Shown: one piece after another, positions 37,004 through 45,371 of the stretch
Position numbering within the stretch: the first letter of the stretch is position 1
How the letters are laid out: every line of letters starts with the position of its first letter
Source: Obrimoposthia wandeli
Lineage: Eukaryota
DNA: 64,000 nt
Assembly (NCBI GenBank): GCA_977020255.1
Contig: CDROCS010001764.1
Coordinates: forward strand, 1-64,000
Reading direction: 5' to 3'
Made by a program: the position numbers and the translations under genes
The notes under the pieces: model-generated
Told to the model about the DNA's origin: nothing
What the model saw: the letters and a program-made list of their open reading frames with translations, nothing else
Database searches by the model: none

Positions 37004-37597
37004 CTAATAACTAGCACTGGGAAGGGTCCACACCACTACGGCTTCTTCCTCAGTTGAAGGGTTACTCGCCCAGTGTGGCTCTTCCCCTTCTAAGGTAAAG
37101 CTGTCACCCGCTTTTAGCAAAAACTCTTTACTGCCAATTTTTAGCCGTAATTGTCCGGATTGTACATAGCCTCCCTCCTCACCTTTGCGTTGGCGGGCTT
37201 CTTCACTGCCCGCACCAGGAGCATAGGTTGATAAAACCATCTGCATCTGCCCACTCAATCGCGGTGAGAGTAACTCTTCGCGAATACCCGTGCCGGTGAA
37301 GCTTAAACTGCGCCGATTACTAGCACGCACTACATAGTTCATTTCATCGACAGGCACAGGCTCATTCGTATGGAAGAACCAGCTAATATTGACCGCCAGC
37401 ACTTCACAAATAGATTGCAGTACTGGTATAGGTAGTGATGAAACGCCGCGCTCGACTTGGCTGAGATAGCCAACTGAACGGCCAATACTTTGCGCCATTG
37501 CCATCAAAGTGACATCTTTAGCTTTGCGCAAATCCCTAATTTGGCGACCGATACGCAAATTTTCACTGTTGATTAAATTTTTCTTTTGCTGGCTCAT
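37004..37597 (-). CDS. XRE-family HTH plus cupin regulator (PuuR-like)
   Basis: IRDLRKAK..TL..MA...GYLSQVERG..S; cupin (HKGEE-like RKGEEGGYV..G.L, GDSF..PH). Confidence 0.88.
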   Translation of the reverse strand: MSQQKKNLINSENLRIGRQIRDLRKAKDVTLMAMAQSIGRSVGYLSQVERGVSSLPIPVLQSICEVLAVNISWFFHTNEPVPVDEMNYVVRASNRRSLSFTGTGIREELLSPRLSGQMQMVLSTYAPGAGSEEARQRKGEEGGYVQSGQLRLKIGSKEFLLKAGDSFTLEGEEPHWASNPSTEEEAVVVWTLPSASY

Positions 37598-37663: not shown

Positions 37664-40135
37664 CTAGGGTATTATTTGTTTCTGTTTTACCAACTCAAAA
37701 TAATTCATTAGCTCAGTTAGTGCCGCCGCCTCCATATTCAAAGAATTCCCGGCGGCTGTGGCACTCTGAACTAAGAGCTTATTCTGCTCACTTGATGTCT
37801 CTAGTTTCGAGACCGAACTACTGATACTTTGCATACTGCTGATTTGCTGATTACTCTCTACCGTGATATTCCCTACCATAGTACCTGTTTGTTGCAGCAC
37901 CAAATAAATGCGATCTAATGCCTCTCCGGTTTTTTGAACTAGGTCATTACCCACCTTCACCATTTGCGAACTCTCTTTGATTAAAACGTCAATGTCCTTA
38001 GACGCTTTAGCCGTGCGTTGCGATAACTCCCTGATTTCATTAGCAACCACGGCAAAACCGCGGCCGTGTTCTCCAGCTCTCGCGGCCTCAACAGCGGCAT
38101 TGAGCGCTAAAATATTAGTTTGAAAAGAAATCGAGTTGATGACGCTTGTAATCTCAGCAATTTTACTGCTCGATGTTTTAATTTGCTGCATCGATTGAAC
38201 CGCTGAGTCAATAATTTCACGACTATCTTCTGATTCCTTTAGCGATTGCTGCATTAATCGATTAGCCTCGCCTGAGCCGCTTGCATTTAAGCGCGCGGCG
38301 GCAAAGGCTTTAGCTAAGCTAACAGAAATTTCCGATAATGCCTCCATTTGACTGTTAATTCTGAGATCGAGGTTTTTACCTTCATCGCTAATATGGGTTG
38401 AGCTATCTTTAACTTTTGTCGCCATCGCTTGCACATCACCAACCGTCGTATTTAAATTAACGATTGTACTGTTTAAGCCATGGGTAATTAGCTGGAGTTG
38501 ACCTTGGTAGTCACCTCCAATACTCCTACTGAGTACACCTTGGCTCATCGCATTAGCCACCGACATGATCTCCTCAATGGTTAACTCCAGTGAGCTCATA
38601 GACAAATTGACGCTTTGTTTTAAGGCCTGTAAATCTCCACCTGCTGTAACTGTCACCCGATTGCTAAACTCTCCTTGAGCAGCCCCATTCATCACCGAAC
38701 TAATATCGGAAATAACGCCATCCAACCTCGCCATGGTGTTATTCGCTCCCTCAACTGATCGACTAAAGCTTCCCTCCAATCCAGCTAAACTGACTGTTTT
38801 CTTGAAATTACCTTGTTGTAGTGATTCCATCACTTGCGCTATTACCGACATGCTGTGGTCTATATTTTCACAGCTGCGGTTCAGTACGGTCTTTAGAACA
38901 AGAAAGTCCCCTTTCACGTCTATTTCAATTCGTGAGGTTAAATCTCCCACCGCGATGTGCTGCACAACTTTATTCACTTCACTAATCATAACTTGCTGCT
39001 GTGATAGCATTGTATTGAAAGCGGCTCCCGCTCTACCTATTTCATCCATTGGCAGGTCTTTCACTCTGGTGCTCAAAGCTCCTGTTTCCGCGATGGACAA
39101 CATGGTGTTACTTAAACGAGCGATCGGGGAGGTAATCCTGCGGATAACTAAGATAGAAATAACAATGCCCAGTATCAGAGCAATTAAATTGATAATGCTG
39201 TTACGCCATATCATCTTCTTGATACCCAGCTTTGAGGAGGCCCTTGCAAGCTTGTTGGTTTGATTAGCGGTCACTTGCAAACGTAAAACAAAATTTTCCG
39301 CATGTAAGCGGGAAGCGGGAATTGTTTCATAAATCAATTGATCATTTTTGACACTCACCTCTTTCATTACAGCGACCATTTGACTGGCTGTCTCAATCAA
39401 CAAAGAAATATCTGAAAGCCAAGATACACTCTGCTGATTTTTACCCAAGACATTAAGAGAAGCTTCTAATATACCAATATTCCTTTGCAGCACCATTACT
39501 TCAACCTCAACTTGCGTAAGGTCATCGGCGCGGCTAGTGGTCGCATACACATTAAAAAAGTAACGTAATTGAGATAAGTGCAATTGCACAGTCGCTATCT
39601 TCAGCATGACATCTGAATTAGCTTTCGAATATGTTCGAATATTGGTGAGCAGACCGATCAATTGCGGCATCAATTCATTGTTAAAATTATCAATTCTAGC
39701 GTCTTTTTCAAAAACTGAATTTGGAAATTCGCGAGTAACTAAAAGCGCGTATTTAGGAAAATAATCGACTAATTGATCTAAAAAATACTGCTGAGACACG
39801 GTAAGCTTCTGCAATTGTAGCTCCGCTAAAAGCCACTTCTGCTCTTCTATTTTAAGATCTAGCAATGCTAAATCACCTTTGGCATGGGTATGGTAAAACT
39901 GCTTGATGGCTGCTTGCGTACCGAGAGTATTACTAATGAGGCCAGCAGCTAATGCCGAAACGGGGATTGCTTCCTGAGTGATATGATCAATATCTATCTT
40001 CACGTTCTCTGCGGTGAAATAAACAATTGTCCCAGCTAGCCCCGATAACATTAATAGAGTGGCAGGTATGATGGCTATTTTCTTAGCAATCGCCAATTGA
40101 TTAAACACGCTTAAAACACTCTTGAAAAAAAACAT
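37664..40135 (-). CDS. Methyl-accepting chemotaxis protein with large helical periplasmic domain and poly-HAMP
   Basis: Two TMs about 270 aa apart, HAMP ([11 protein letters not shown]), four further HAMP-like units (GDLTSRI, GNFKKTV, GEFSNRV, GVLSRSI), [30 protein letters not shown]. Confidence 0.93.
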
Positions 40136-40145
40136 GATGTACCCT

Positions 40146-41084
40146 CTACTTAATCGTTCTAGCTATTTTTTCTAAATAGGCACCCAGTAAACGCATTTTT
40201 TCTAAGACATCTGCAGGTTTTTTATTTTCAGGGAGGGAGACAATATCATGTGGTTTTTTTATACCTTGGGCCATTTTCAATCTCACGAGTTCGGCAAGTA
40301 TATTATTCGTGGTGTCATAAACATCAGACGGGCTAATTTCACCCGAGGGGAAAGGCCGCACTTTTACCGCCTTCAAATTTAATTTCCGTTCAATTCGTGC
40401 TAATCGATACAGGTTTTTAAATCCTTCTATATTCGGAGAGATCGGCTTTACATTTTCATGAATAGGCTCCCCTTTAGAGGTTAAGGCCACATTTAACGTA
40501 TCAGCTAGCTCCTGTGTATCGTCTAGTGCATAGAGTACATTTCGATAAACCAAATTTGGGCTAATTGAACCCACTAGACTATCAAGGCTATAAGAAACTC
40601 GCCAAAGGTTCTCATAAACATCCGCAGGCGTTTTACCTAATATTAAAGGTACATTTTTCTGCTGATTGATTGATAACTTACTTTTCAGTGGTTCAAGCGC
40701 TGCCAGTAATTGAGAAATGCTCTGCAATACGTCTTTTGGTACTAAGTTCCTTAGAGGAATTTCCTTTACTGGCAGAGGTTCTAATTGATATTTTCGCTGT
40801 AAATAGATGATTTTTGTTCGTACTTCCAAAGACTTAACATAGACATGTAAAGGGTCTTTATTAATTTGAACACTCGGCTCTTTTGCCTCGTCAAGAATAT
40901 TCTCTGTCGCGCGAATCAGCTTTATATCTGCCAGAAGCTTTTCACTGAGTTGGTAAACATGGCTGGGGGTTATATCGGTTGCATAGCTATAGCAAGAAGC
41001 GGTAATGAGAGTGAAAAATAGCAGCAAATTGGCGATAGACTTCCTAACGGCTGTATTTTCCTTGGCGTTCACAATTGAAATCAT
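40146..41084 (-). CDS. Hypothetical secreted protein with eight ~38-aa xxPxDVY helical repeats
   Basis: Hydrophobic signal-like N-terminus ending SYA; Pro anchors at 40, 78, 116, 153, 176, 214, 252, 290. Confidence 0.8.
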
Positions 41085-41266: not shown

Positions 41267-41749
41267 TTAAAAATATTTAAAATTAAACTGTAGCTGAAAA
41301 GTTGCAACGCTGGCATCATCACCAAAAGGTAAAAAACCGATACTTAACTTGAGCGCCCGATGGCCGAATGTCAGAGAAGGCAGTAGAACGACCGGAATAT
41401 CAGTACGGCTCTCGTAGCCACTGACCAAAAATAGGTTTACACCCGGTGCGACAGTCCAATCATCAAAGTAGTAATCTTTATGCCAGTGAACACCCGCATA
41501 GACACTATCTTTATGATAGCTGTTTTTAAAACCTCCCAAACGTAAATCCAGATCATCTCGAATGGCATAGCTAATCCCAATACCAGGATTGGTTTCATTG
41601 TAGTTTCGTTCAACGCCATTTTCTAGGTAACTATCTTTGCTATGTTTAGAAAAACCATTGATATCTAAACTAAACTCCCCTTCTTCTAAGCCAAATACGC
41701 TGTTCGCAAAAACAACGGCCATCCCCCCTAAGAGTAGCTGATATTTCAT
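41267..41749 (-). CDS. Small outer-membrane beta-barrel protein, PagP-like
   Basis: Signal peptide, alternating aromatic/hydrophobic strands, YNETNPGIG and GGFKNSY..DSVYAG, C-terminal Phe. Confidence 0.6.
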   Translation of the reverse strand: MKYQLLLGGMAVVFANSVFGLEEGEFSLDINGFSKHSKDSYLENGVERNYNETNPGIGISYAIRDDLDLRLGGFKNSYHKDSVYAGVHWHKDYYFDDWTVAPGVNLFLVSGYESRTDIPVVLLPSLTFGHRALKLSIGFLPFGDDASVATFQLQFNFKYF

Positions 41750-41828: not shown

Positions 41829-43445
41829 CTAAGGGTTAACTATCTCCGGGCCCATAATGCTATATGGAAGTGCGGTAGAAAGTGAAGGTATATAAGTCAC
41901 CATAATCAAGAACAACATCAGCACTAACATAAACGGCGTAGCCGCCTTCACTACCTTTGACAAACTCATTCCGGTAATACCTGAGGTGACAAATAGGTTG
42001 AGACCTATTGGCGGCGTTATCATGCCTATTTCCATGTTGACCACCATAATGATCCCCAAGTGAATGGGGTCGATGCCCAACTGCATGGCAATGGGGAATA
42101 CGATAGGCGCAACAATGACTAACAGCCCTGATGGCTCCATAAACTGACCACCGATTAGCAGCAGGATATTGACCGCGATCAAGAAGGTGAACCAGTTAAA
42201 CCCGACCTCTAACATCCATTCTGTTACCATCTGCGGAATACGCTCTTCTGAGAGGGTATGGGCAAACAGCAGAGCGTTAGCGATGATAAACATCAACATA
42301 ATGGTCGTTTTAGTACCTTGCAGCATCACCTCACGTGTCTCACCGCTATAGAGTGCGGGAAAAAAGGATCTAACCAGCAGCCACAAATTGCGACGCCACA
42401 CCACAAGACCGGCAACCACACAACTAACAGCGGATGCCTTGAGATGAGCACCGCGTTTATAGATATAAAACGCCACAATCAAAAATGATAAGCCCCCACC
42501 CCACGCTGCGCGACTGACTGCCGTTACTGTCTCTGAATCCGCCGTGGCGAAGAAAGAGAGAATCATCCACACCAAAAAGAATGATAACCCGTAAACCAAT
42601 GCATTAAAGCCTACTCGCGCATGCTGGCTGTCGGTGTCAGCTACCCAGGTAATACCTTTGAGAGGCCCCATATCTCGATAGACAAAGAGGGCAATAAATA
42701 TTGAATAGATCGCCGCAACGGCCGCCGCTTCAGTTGGCGTGAAAGCGCCACCGTAAATTCCACCCATAATGATGACGATCAGAAACAATCCCCAACCCGC
42801 TTCTTTACCGCCTTGCACAATATTACCGAAGCCCTTCCAAGGCTCAGATGGTAGATTTTTAATGCGTGCCACCACATAGATAGCCAACATCAGCATACCA
42901 CCGGCGATTAACCCGGGAATAACACCCGCTAAAAACATTCGCCCAACAGAGACGTTGGTTGATGACGCGTAAACCACCATCACGATGGACGGCGGGATCA
43001 AAATCCCTAAGGTACCTGCGTTGGCGATGATCCCAGAGGCAAACTCCTTTGAATACCCCACTTGACGCATACCGACAATGGCAATACTACCAATAGCGAT
43101 GACAGTCGCCGGTGAAGATCCTGATAACGCGGCAAACATCATGCACGCCAGTACCGAGGCCATCGCCAAGCCGCCGCGGAAATGTCCGACACTGGCTATC
43201 GCGAAGTTGATCAGTCGCTTGGCGACCCCACCGGTCGACATAAATGAGGAGGCGATGATGAAGAAAGGTATCGCCAATAAGGTATAGTGTTGCCCAGCAC
43301 CAAACAGTGAAATGGCCACTGAGGTTAATTTGGCGTCTGAGACAAAAGTAATAAATAAAATTGATGATAGCCCCAACGATATTCCCACCGGCATGCCGAT
43401 GAACAATAAGAAGAGTACTAAACTAAATAAAATGAGCGCTTCCAC
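41829..43445 (-). CDS. dctM: TRAP transporter large permease (with internal insertion)
   Basis: LLAIPFF, SGSSPAT, GTLGILIPPS, FTPTEAAAV, EIGMITPPIGLNLFV. Confidence 0.93.
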   Translation of the reverse strand: MEALILFSLVLFLLFIGMPVGISLGLSSILFITFVSDAKLTSVAISLFGAGQHYTLLAIPFFIIASSFMSTGGVAKRLINFAIASVGHFRGGLAMASVLACMMFAALSGSSPATVIAIGSIAIVGMRQVGYSKEFASGIIANAGTLGILIPPSIVMVVYASSTNVSVGRMFLAGVIPGLIAGGMLMLAIYVVARIKNLPSEPWKGFGNIVQGGKEAGWGLFLIVIIMGGIYGGAFTPTEAAAVAAIYSIFIALFVYRDMGPLKGITWVADTDSQHARVGFNALVYGLSFFLVWMILSFFATADSETVTAVSRAAWGGGLSFLIVAFYIYKRGAHLKASAVSCVVAGLVVWRRNLWLLVRSFFPALYSGETREVMLQGTKTTIMLMFIIANALLFAHTLSEERIPQMVTEWMLEVGFNWFTFLIAVNILLLIGGQFMEPSGLLVIVAPIVFPIAMQLGIDPIHLGIIMVVNMEIGMITPPIGLNLFVTSGITGMSLSKVVKAATPFMLVLMLFLIMVTYIPSLSTALPYSIMGPEIVNP

Positions 43446-43460
43446 TGAAAATTCTCCGCC

Positions 43461-44138
43461 TTAGTCTTTTAAAATATTCTTATTTTCTTCGACCAGCTCT
43501 TGAGCCTCGTGCCCACTGATCAACATCCGACGTCGCCCTTGATAGATATCGATAAAAGCCTGCCCCGAACGGTAAACCAGTAGCGCTAAACTAATCGGTA
43601 ATATAACCAGCACCAACCAGCGATGTACTCTTGGCTGCAAACCGAAAATTTCTTGCATAAAATCTGGATAGCGCAGCTCGTCGGAGCCGATACCTATCTT
43701 GAACATTTTCGCCCAGTACTCTATAGCTCCACCGCGCACATCTACACCGAGTAAATGTAACCAAGTAGAATCCAATAAAATTAAACCGTAAAACATACTG
43801 CCCAACGCGCCAATCAACGCTAGTACTTTGGTGACGGGGCTCGCCACAGCATTAAGTAGTAAGTCGACCCCTAAGTGGGTGCCATTTTTAATCCCGTAGC
43901 TCATACCGAGTAAAATAAGCCAAGAAAAAGCCAAAGTGTTGTACTCAAGTGCAGCTGACCAGCCAGAATTAAAGCTATAGCGGGCAACTACTTGACCAAA
44001 TGAGACAACCAAGATGGAGGTGATCAATAAAATAAGTATATTCTCTTCCGCCTTTTCAACCATTTTAGGGAAAAAACGCTCTAGCAACCAAATTGCAGCA
44101 ATCAGAATACAGAGATAAATATGCGGCCAATAAGCCAT
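43461..44138 (-). CDS. dctQ: TRAP transporter small permease
   Basis: FGQVVARY, W...LGMSYGIKNGTHLGVD; AGGAG RBS before ATG 44138. Confidence 0.9.
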   Translation of the reverse strand: MAYWPHIYLCILIAAIWLLERFFPKMVEKAEENILILLITSILVVSFGQVVARYSFNSGWSAALEYNTLAFSWLILLGMSYGIKNGTHLGVDLLLNAVASPVTKVLALIGALGSMFYGLILLDSTWLHLLGVDVRGGAIEYWAKMFKIGIGSDELRYPDFMQEIFGLQPRVHRWLVLVILPISLALLVYRSGQAFIDIYQGRRRMLISGHEAQELVEENKNILKD

Positions 44139-44284
44139 TGGGATTCTCCTGAGGGTATTGCTATTCTTATCAAACTTTTGTGACAAAACCGCTCTATTTT
44201 CGCTTAGTAGATAAACATTCAAGCAATAACTAATTAAGAAAAAGCGTTTAACCTTAACCACTTAGCATCAGGGTTAAACACTTT

Positions 44285-44350
44285 TTTTGCTGAAATTACG
44301 CCACAACCGTTACCATTGAGGTCATCGCTGGTGGCGTAAAGTTAGCAAAA
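44285..44350 (-). other. Long imperfect hairpin between dctP and dctQ
   Basis: TTTTGCTGAAATTACGCCAC ... GTGGCGTAAAGTTAGCAAAA (about 20-bp arms); second hairpin CAAACGC-AGC-GCGTTTG at 44354-44370. Confidence 0.6.
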
Positions 44351-44381
44351 GATCAAACGCAGCGCGTTTGAAAATACGGGA

Positions 44382-45371
44382 TTAAGCGCCCGCAGCGTTG
44401 GAGATCAAATCGGCACCAATGTCGCTCTCAAACTGCTTCCACACAGGCTTCATCGCCTCAACCCACTTAGCGCGTTGCTCGTCCGTTAGCACATTGATTT
44501 TGCCGCCCGCTTTCAAGATATTAGCGCGGTTAGCCGCTTCCTTATCTTTAACATTAAGGTTAGCTTGCTGGGTCACTTCATCAGCTATTTTCAAGAACTG
44601 ATCACGCACATCCGGCTCTAAGGTATCCAACCACTCAGAAGAGGTCATAAACAAGTAAGCCAATAATTGGTGGCTAGTTTCTGTGACGCTGTCCTGTACT
44701 TCGAAGAATTTCTTAGTGTAGATGTTAGACCAAGTATTTTCTTGCCCATCGACAACACCTGTCTGTAGTGCACCGTAAACCTCTGAGAAAGCCATCGGCT
44801 GAGGTGATCCACCCATCGCAGCGATCATTGCTTTTGCAACATCTGAGGATTGAACACGGAACTTCATGCCTTTCGCATCACTCGGCGTCAATAGCGCTTT
44901 GTTACCTGAAAAATACTTCATTCCAGACATCCAATAACCCAAACCGACAAAGCCGACATCACTCATCGCATTCAGTAACTCTTTACCATCTGCAGAGTTA
45001 GTGAAACGCATTGCTGCATCCATGTCTTTAAACATAAAGGGTAAATCAAATACGCCATACTTACGGCTGTAAGAGCCAAACTTAGAGAGTGATGGTGCTA
45101 GGATTTGCACGTCACCCAACAGCAGCGCTTCTAGCTCTTTACTGTCACCAAATAAGGTCGAGCTTGGAAAGACTTCGATACACATCTTACCGTTCATTTC
45201 TTTGTTAACGCGCTCCGCCAGTGCGTTAGCGGCAACAACTTTAGGATGAGTCGTACCACCGGTAACATGGCTTAGTTTGGCGACAACTTCGCCCTCTTCA
45301 CAGCTCGCCGAGGCTGTTACTGCTGCTAGAGAAAGGGCAATTGCTGTTAGCGCTGTAGTTAATTTTTTCAT
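44382..45371 (-). CDS. dctP: TRAP periplasmic C4-dicarboxylate-binding protein
   Basis: SSTLFGDSKELEALLLGDVQ, FDLPF, KFRVQ, FSEVYGALQTGVVDGQEN. Confidence 0.92.
   Translation of the reverse strand: MKKLTTALTAIALSLAAVTASASCEEGEVVAKLSHVTGGTTHPKVVAANALAERVNKEMNGKMCIEVFPSSTLFGDSKELEALLLGDVQILAPSLSKFGSYSRKYGVFDLPFMFKDMDAAMRFTNSADGKELLNAMSDVGFVGLGYWMSGMKYFSGNKALLTPSDAKGMKFRVQSSDVAKAMIAAMGGSPQPMAFSEVYGALQTGVVDGQENTWSNIYTKKFFEVQDSVTETSHQLLAYLFMTSSEWLDTLEPDVRDQFLKIADEVTQQANLNVKDKEAANRANILKAGGKINVLTDEQRAKWVEAMKPVWKQFESDIGADLISNAAGA

Follow-up and report, generated by a model that had tools for sequence, protein, structure and literature searches.

The window analysed here, a stretch of 64,000 nucleotides from contig CDROCS010001764.1 of the Obrimoposthia wandeli assembly GCA_977020255.1, carries on its reverse strand a gene for a repeat protein (hereafter T) and, directly downstream of it, a gene for a chemoreceptor of the methyl-accepting chemotaxis protein (MCP) type; the coordinates of both genes, of their domains and motifs, and of the junction between them are collected in Table 1. 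No terminator-like site was found between T and the MCP gene, and promoter and terminator scans performed no better than on shuffled sequence. The two genes are probably co-transcribed as an operon. Downstream of the MCP lies a gene for an HTH-cupin regulator (37004-37597, reverse strand), and upstream of T lie the genes for a TRAP transporter (DctP, Q, and M; 41829-45371, reverse strand). In the closest relative of this locus, found in a Pseudomonadales metagenome-assembled genome (MAG), the T-MCP pair is flanked by the regulator at 87% identity and by DctM, the reached part of which is 92% identical; neither accompanies the pair in loci that are less closely related. Recurrence of the TRAP transporter was limited to this closest relative, and the transporter was therefore rejected as part of the T unit. 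An open reading frame of 160 residues lies 182 nt upstream of T (41267-41749, reverse strand); its start resembles a signal peptide, and its OprF/PagP-like matches are weak (E about 0.01). None of the 18 related loci contains this outer-membrane-protein-like (OMP-like) frame, and it was likewise rejected as part of the unit.

Table 1. Features of the T-MCP locus, in window coordinates. The basis for all eight helix-start motifs is the translation, the family alignment, the AlphaFold2 (AF2) helices, and motif counts over the family.
Feature	Position	Strand	Basis
Gene T, 312-aa repeat protein; ATG start, TAG stop	40146..41084	-	Open reading frame list and translation
T signal-peptide-like N-terminus, residues 1-35; probable cleavage after S-Y-A35	40980..41084	-	Sequence reading
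T domain 1, residues 37-173; repeat units 1-4 (H1-H4)	40566..40976	-	AF2 helices; half-versus-half homology; parallel-register couplings H1-H3, H1-H4, H2-H4
T helix-start motif 1, residues 39-44, T-P-S-H-V-Y	40953..40970	-	
T helix-start motif 2, residues 77-82, D-P-L-H-V-Y	40839..40856	-	
T helix-start motif 3, residues 115-120, V-P-K-D-V-L	40725..40742	-	
T helix-start motif 4, residues 152-157, T-P-A-D-V-Y	40614..40631	-	
T domain 2, residues 174-312; repeat units 5-8 (H5-H8)	40149..40565	-	AF2 helices; half-versus-half homology; parallel-register couplings H5-H7, H5-H8, H6-H8
T helix-start motif 5, residues 175-180, S-P-N-L-V-Y	40545..40562	-	
T helix-start motif 6, residues 213-218, K-P-I-S-P-N, degenerate copy	40431..40448	-	
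T helix-start motif 7, residues 251-256, S-P-S-D-V-Y	40317..40334	-	
T helix-start motif 8, residues 289-294, K-P-A-D-V-L	40203..40220	-	
T/MCP junction: T TAG stop and overlapping GAGGG Shine-Dalgarno-like run, 10 nt to MCP ATG	40136..40148	-	Sequence reading
Partner MCP, 823 aa; several HAMP domains and MCP signalling domain	37664..40135	-	Pfam MCPsignal 1.7e-42, HAMP_2 2.4e-20, HAMP 1.4e-16
MCP periplasmic domain, about residues 41-307; predicted six-helix double four-helix bundle, HBM/TorS type	39215..40015	-	AF2 and Foldseek

An earlier note on this DNA, made from the sequence alone, had described T as a protein of eight proline-marked repeats arranged in two four-unit domains. The translation places the eight motif prolines exactly where that note had counted them (P40, P78, P116, P153, P176, P214, P252, and P290), with the spacing that it gave (38/38/37/23/38/38/38). 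The general form of the motif is [T/S]-P-x-[D/H]-V-[Y/F], present in eight copies, and across 272 family domains it is kept at all eight positions, with Pro in 71-89% of the domains depending on the position, Asp, Glu, or His at P+2, Val at P+3 in 56-89%, and Tyr or Phe at P+4. Amongst the columns of a 42-sequence alignment, those that are invariant or near-invariant are mainly motif positions; the conserved polar residues are H42, Q45, R58, Y82, K84, E87, K91, K151, S164, and E265. The sixth motif had been called degenerate, and the window copy has indeed lost its D-V and contains a second proline (P217) besides P214. It is nevertheless a genuine unit: alignment A1 shows no variation at P214, and K-x-P-x-D-V is the family consensus here, with the D-V loss being confined to the window's copy.

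The internal duplication is evident at several levels of comparison. Smith-Waterman alignment of residues 37-173 with residues 174-312 gave a score of 109 against 34 +/- 6.3 for shuffled sequences (z 11.9; none of 500 shuffles equalled it), and the family profiles of the two halves align with hhalign over 134 columns at a probability of 99.9% and an E value of 1.8e-31. Together with the AF2 model, these comparisons support two duplicated four-helix domains of ~137 residues, as had been proposed. Profile-profile comparison of single units pairs 1 with 5, 2 with 6, 3 with 7, and 4 with 8 at E values of 1e-10 to 1e-13, and the odd-numbered units are also similar to one another (~1e-11). This pattern of pairing and of odd-unit similarity suggests that T may have grown from a single unit to four and then to eight.

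The N-terminus of T has the features of an export signal, with a basic n-region (K8, R14, and K15), a hydrophobic core of ~14 residues that falls below the membrane-span threshold in a 19-residue window, and an S-Y-A sequence preceding T36. In the alignment of homologues, the N-termini are hydrophobic but differ in sequence and length, without conservation of Cys31, which makes a type I signal peptide more likely than a lipobox on this reading of the sequence. Lipidation through Cys31 was considered and rejected on account of this lack of conservation and of an atypical residue at -3. The protein is thus probably secreted to the periplasm, with a mature form of ~277 residues and a pI of 9.3. 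Mature T contains no Cys and just four His, which fits the statement in the earlier note that no haem or metal motif could be recognised.

The AF2 model of T, built on the family alignment, has a mean pLDDT of 93.3 and a pTM of 0.86, and is all-helical with no strands. Eight helices of 19-21 residues are predicted (residues 40-60, 78-98, 116-136, 153-171, 176-196, 215-234, 252-272, and 290-310), one beginning at every motif proline as anticipated, and residues 10-30 are rendered as a further helix. The linkers are non-helical, with lengths of 16-18 residues and one to three Pro each, the exception being the four-residue link between H4 and H5. Mean-field coevolution analysis (DCA) was performed on the 272 family domains (effective number 231), and its strongest couplings are between different helices in parallel register: 43-123, 50-130, and 53-134 for H1-H3; 47-159 (z 12) for H1-H4; 176-252, 182-260, 189-270, and 193-272 for H5-H7; and 176-290 and 183-296 for H5-H8. 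These couplings fit the pseudo-fourfold bundle that had been put forward from the repeats. Adjacent helices couple at an offset of +37 or +38, a repeat period at which couplings can be inflated in repeat proteins; the couplings between linkers and helices lie off that period, with residues 63/70/73/76 of linker 1-2 pairing antiparallel with residues 169/165/161/161 of H4, and residues 286 and 288 of linker 7-8 pairing antiparallel with residues 186, 180, and 177 of H5. Couplings between the two domains are weak and inconsistent. The combination of parallel helix-helix couplings and antiparallel linker-helix couplings indicates that T would form two bundles of four helices each, all parallel, with extended linkers leading back from one helix to the next. 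The earlier description of a Pro-rich extended segment after each helix can be refined in that these segments are predicted to act as return linkers that let the four helices run parallel. In light of what is generally known about helix capping, the preferred reading of the P-x-D-V-Y motif is that it signals the start of a helix rather than serving in binding, with Thr/Ser as the N-cap, Pro at N1, Asp/His at N3 (a "capping box"), and Val-Tyr as the first core residues.

Comparison of T with known families and folds bore out its description as unrecognised, and no characterised family that would explain the repeats was matched in Pfam, NCBIfam, or the PDB. The best Pfam-A match was RNA_pol_Rpb1_6 (E 0.29; 11 bits against a cut-off of 23), nothing in NCBIfam reached E <= 1, ten longer family members contained no credible domain, and the family profile found only noise amongst PDB chains at E <= 10. 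All source names of the homologues are "hypothetical protein", and the neighbours in the ESM Atlas belong to unnamed clusters. Structural comparison of the T model with the PDB using Foldseek returned a best E value of 0.5 with TM below 0.2, and in an exhaustive VIA comparison with 48,161 representative chains the best Z was 6.5 with three helices per match only, values up to which indicate, for helical proteins, a common arrangement and not kinship. The VIA matches extend over 190-315 residues in their target chains, which would be expected if the intervening antiparallel elements were skipped. Judged against solved structures, the predicted whole-chain architecture of T thus appears to have no counterpart. 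The best partial matches, to the designed protein sc-CC-5 (PDB 8QKD) and to gp41-5 (3O3X), cover 103 residues and only three of the eight T helices (Z 5.8-6.2; rmsd 3.1-3.2 A). In sc-CC-5, parallel central helices are connected through return helices (PMC11288890). T resembles these two proteins in that successive helices run parallel by way of a return element, and differs in that the return elements are helices in sc-CC-5 and gp41-5 and extended, Pro-containing linkers in the T model. Classes of protein that T might have been expected to join were also compared individually. Against Venus-flytrap binding proteins of the TorT/LuxP type, no Peripla_BP-type profile, fold match, or strands were found. 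Against CpxP/Spy/ZraP, T showed no LTXXQ motif, no Pfam match at E <= 1, no PDB sequence match, and a parallel helix register. Against TPR, Sel1, HEAT, and ankyrin-like repeats, no Pfam repeat matched, and the T unit consists of one helix and a ~17-residue linker in parallel register. A literature search for a periplasmic accessory protein like T, or for an operon joining a hybrid kinase to CheB-CheR, returned analogies only (RsbK/RsbM, QseG-QseE, and TorT-TorS), with the T family going unmentioned.

The family itself is large. A word search with T found 53 homologous clusters. At E <= 1e-3, an exhaustive search with a profile matched 1,471 representatives of 50%-identity clusters, and 583 of them reached E <= 1e-30; the matches include proteins of ~600 residues with two full copies of the module and forms extended at the N-terminus. 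In a sample of 401 genomes spread evenly over Pseudomonadota, the phylum of one T carrier, matches occurred in 35 genomes (about 9%), and family members are also present in SAR324 MAGs. Culturable carriers include Alteromonas sp. a30 and Endozoicomonas sp. G2_1. The assembly from which the window derives (1.35 Gb, 6,912 contigs) evidently combines a eukaryotic host with bacteria, the window being a bacterial contig within an assembly of eukaryotic size. Three further T homologues are found in this assembly, on contigs C2027, C121, and C2785, where they lie on stretches of 39% and 28% GC compared with 40-50% in the window; because of this difference, more than one bacterium seems to be present. 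The two 28% GC stretches are mutually syntenic.

Hydrophobic spans of the partner MCP lie at about residues 20-40 and 308-335, and an AF2 model of its residues 1-337 (pLDDT 89) places helices at residues 16-83, 86-107, 113-169, 174-200, 203-230, and 234-335. The periplasmic domain has the dimensions of a double four-helix bundle of the helical bimodular (HBM) or TorS-like type, namely about 250-280 residues and six helices, two of which are very long in the model. The best Foldseek matches were the TorS sensor domain (3o1h/3o1i/3i9y), PilJ (8wdf, 7zjr), and McpS-LBD (2yfa/2yfb), at a probability of 1.00 and TMt of 0.45-0.72. Because no Pfam sensor-domain model matched the domain at E <= 1, its predicted likeness to TorS and McpS is to be read as similarity of fold only. 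The charges of the two proteins are mildly complementary (pI 9.3 for T versus 5.8 for the MCP domain).

The genes adjacent to T were surveyed in 51 loci, comprising the window, 18 loci from GTDB species genomes, three from the same assembly, 20 from the phylum sample, and nine further loci. Pfam or BLAST identified a membrane sensor gene directly next to T in 46 of these; another four are consistent with such a neighbour by open reading frame size, placement, or clade, and one lies at a contig end. Chemoreceptors, CHASE kinases, and dCache hybrid kinases make up the sensors. In most cases T and the sensor gene overlap or are separated by no more than 20 nt, and across diverse genomes T is both adjacent to and in the same direction as its sensor, as in a sensor-associated accessory class. 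An MCP gene comes directly after T in 13 of the 18 GTDB loci; in four the order is CHASE histidine kinase, receiver protein, T, and one is at a contig edge. The first HAMP domain lies near residue 315-330 in those GTDB-locus MCPs checked with Pfam, so these receptors appear to have in common a periplasmic domain of ~280 residues without a Pfam assignment. In the window's own assembly, the T copy on the 39% GC stretch is followed by a 651-residue MCP, and the two copies on the 28% GC stretches are flanked by a REC-GGDEF gene on one side and a dCache-HAMP-GAF kinase on the other. In the phylum sample (20 loci), the gene immediately downstream of T encodes a dCache hybrid kinase in 16 of 19 cases and an MCP in two of 19. 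These kinases are 1,350-1,400 residues long with HK_sensor_dom_bact/dCache, HAMP, GAF, HisKA, HATPase, and receiver domains, and the upstream neighbours of T are often CHASE3 proteins. A sensor accompanies T in each of the nine further loci (seven by Pfam and two by size of the open reading frame), including 4HB MCPs upstream of T, an MCP-hemerythrin fusion, and dCache kinases; the T proteins with two copies of the module lie ahead of a ~1,100-residue dCache hybrid kinase. A maximum-likelihood tree of 55 T domains splits by type of partner (six label changes, against an average of 25.7 in 200 shuffles, none of which was as low), a clustering that, like adjacency, is expected of any co-inherited gene pair and is not proof of contact. 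Two genomes (G009 and G024) each carry paralogues of T in different partner clades, and the split is therefore not solely a product of species phylogeny.

In a distant branch of the family, a recurrent same-strand array is formed by an optional CHASE3 protein (in some cases carrying HAMP and GAF), a T homologue, and a dCache-HAMP-GAF hybrid kinase of 1,350-1,400 residues with two or three receiver domains (L064, 5994-12724; also L062, L063, L065, L067-L070, L072, L074, L076, and L077). The kinase is followed in L064 by a CheB-CheR fusion of ~560 residues (Pfam), and most of the other loci have an open reading frame of ~560 residues in that position. The attachment of a methylation-adaptation enzyme pair to a kinase, and not to an MCP, recalls RsbK/RsbM of Bacillus cereus (PMC4574943). 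A gene for an Alginate_exp (PF13372) porin follows the T-sensor pair in three unrelated loci (L006, 8928-10280; L011, 8860-10188; L017, 6951-8399), and this porin may be a dedicated entry route for what is sensed. The two-module T proteins (615-632 residues, 16 helices) are encoded in L081 (6993-8840), L082 (3632-5527), and L083 (7672-9570), with two large hybrid kinases downstream and, upstream, an HTH-receiver gene in L081 and open reading frames of similar size in L082 and L083. On the tree the first modules of these proteins group separately from the second ones, both in old clades, and the duplication is thus ancient. In L088 (3492-6473), a 993-residue chemoreceptor ending in a hemerythrin domain has a T homologue directly upstream.

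On balance, T is probably a periplasmic accessory or co-sensor subunit of the adjacent sensor, on which it is proposed to dock, and the near-constant adjacency to a membrane sensor gene favors this role over that of a free-standing binding protein. The protein would be exported to the periplasm with removal of its signal peptide and would fold into two homologous bundles, each containing four parallel helices of ~20 residues with a capping motif at every start, with a Pro-containing linker of ~17 residues after each helix running back to the start of the next. It would then act as the periplasmic partner of the neighbouring sensor, here a poly-HAMP chemoreceptor, by docking on the TorS/McpS-like double four-helix-bundle domain of the MCP and setting or relaying the stimulus. 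The logic would be that of TorT-TorS or LuxP-LuxQ, built on an unrelated all-helical fold. The sensor domains of the partners belong to four different folds (HBM-like, 4HB, CHASE, and dCache-like), and a single docking mode therefore cannot serve all T partners. A broader proposal, put forward more tentatively, is that T could be the founding example of a widespread periplasmic co-sensor class whose fold is unseen in solved structures. Chemoreceptors and histidine kinases of at least four periplasmic folds would have recruited this class time and again, and one large branch of it would have a fixed module of CHASE3 protein, T, dCache-GAF hybrid kinase, and CheB-CheR fusion.

Within a sensor partnership, T may carry a ligand or may only modulate the sensor. 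The conserved polar residues of T and the occasional presence of an Alginate_exp porin gene favor a solute, whereas the diversity of partner sensor folds favors a more generic modulator. A ligand-free protein that holds the sensor off or on in the manner of CpxP or YfiR, and that is released or titrated by an envelope condition (e.g., misfolded proteins, redox, or ionic change), is considered unlikely, even though the context evidence for it equals that for a co-sensor and partners of four periplasmic folds would be easier to accommodate. T is small, basic, and all-helical, without Cys or an obvious cofactor motif, as such a modulator could be; however, it lacks LTXXQ motifs, matches neither a CpxP/Spy Pfam model at E <= 1 nor a PDB chain, and has many conserved polar residues that could equally line a binding site, and the porin gene in several loci hints at an imported solute.

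A contact-free relationship is less probable again. T would then be an envelope protein with its own job (structure, chaperoning, or a surface polymer) that is merely co-transcribed or co-regulated with the sensor, a possibility that draws on the putative nature of the T-sensor interaction, on the outer-membrane genes nearby (Alginate_exp in L006, L011, and L017; the OMP-like open reading frame in the window), and on an elongated helical repeat architecture that suits scaffolds. However, chemoreceptors do not regulate transcription, leaving ~22 MCP-linked loci unexplained by regulation, T stays next to a sensor in very different operons even as its other neighbours vary, and the T tree tracks the type of partner even inside one genome. 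It is very improbable that the N-terminal hydrophobic stretch is an uncleaved anchor and T a membrane-tethered lateral organiser of sensors (e.g., in arrays): the helix modelled at residues 10-30 would allow it, but the hydrophobic core is too short for a membrane span by the threshold applied, a small-x-small site (S-Y-A) follows it, and N-termini unconserved in sequence and length across the family are typical of signal peptides.

The co-sensor role favored here has precedents in systems that resemble T and its partners in part. TorS is the textbook case of a double four-helix-bundle domain signalled by a separate periplasmic protein, and the best-matching PDB fold for the periplasmic domain of the MCP is the TorS sensor domain, whose structure was solved with TorT bound in 3o1h/3o1i. 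In both TorT-TorS and T-MCP, a separately encoded periplasmic protein is paired with a membrane sensor, with binding being only proposed in the case of T. The differences are that TorT is an alpha/beta Venus-flytrap protein whereas T is built of all-helical repeats without a PDB match, and that the output is a kinase in TorS and a chemoreceptor at the window locus. LuxQ is a hybrid kinase with a tandem-PAS/dCache-like periplasmic domain, and its partner LuxP is a periplasmic binding protein; similarly, in the largest branch of the T family the gene immediately downstream of T encodes a hybrid kinase whose periplasmic domain is dCache-like. The fold of LuxP is unrelated to that of T, and the T-linked kinases add HAMP and GAF domains, with a CheB-CheR fusion gene downstream in L064. 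CpxP, Spy, and ZraP have LTXXQ motifs and an antiparallel helical-hairpin fold. Like these proteins and QseG, T is a small helical periplasmic protein encoded with a sensor, on which it is proposed to act as they act on their kinases. It is distinguished from them by having no LTXXQ, no Pfam or PDB similarity, no family-conserved lipobox, and a predicted parallel-helix topology. QseG-QseE is a pair of periplasmic accessory protein and sensor kinase (PMC12691602).

The all-parallel architecture predicted for T is unusual for a natural single-chain protein and, if it holds up, would be of interest to structural biologists and protein designers. Since T is small, Cys-free, and predicted to be well ordered, the idea that it is a sensor partner is directly testable. 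To our knowledge, the signal detected by most bacterial chemoreceptors and sensor kinases is still unknown, and indirect sensing via a periplasmic partner is known only from a few binding-protein families. If the proposed role is correct, bacterial sensing would gain a new input route through a family that currently has no name, Pfam model, or solved relative, and this could explain why receptors unmatched by Pfam, such as the MCP in the window, resist ligand assignment.
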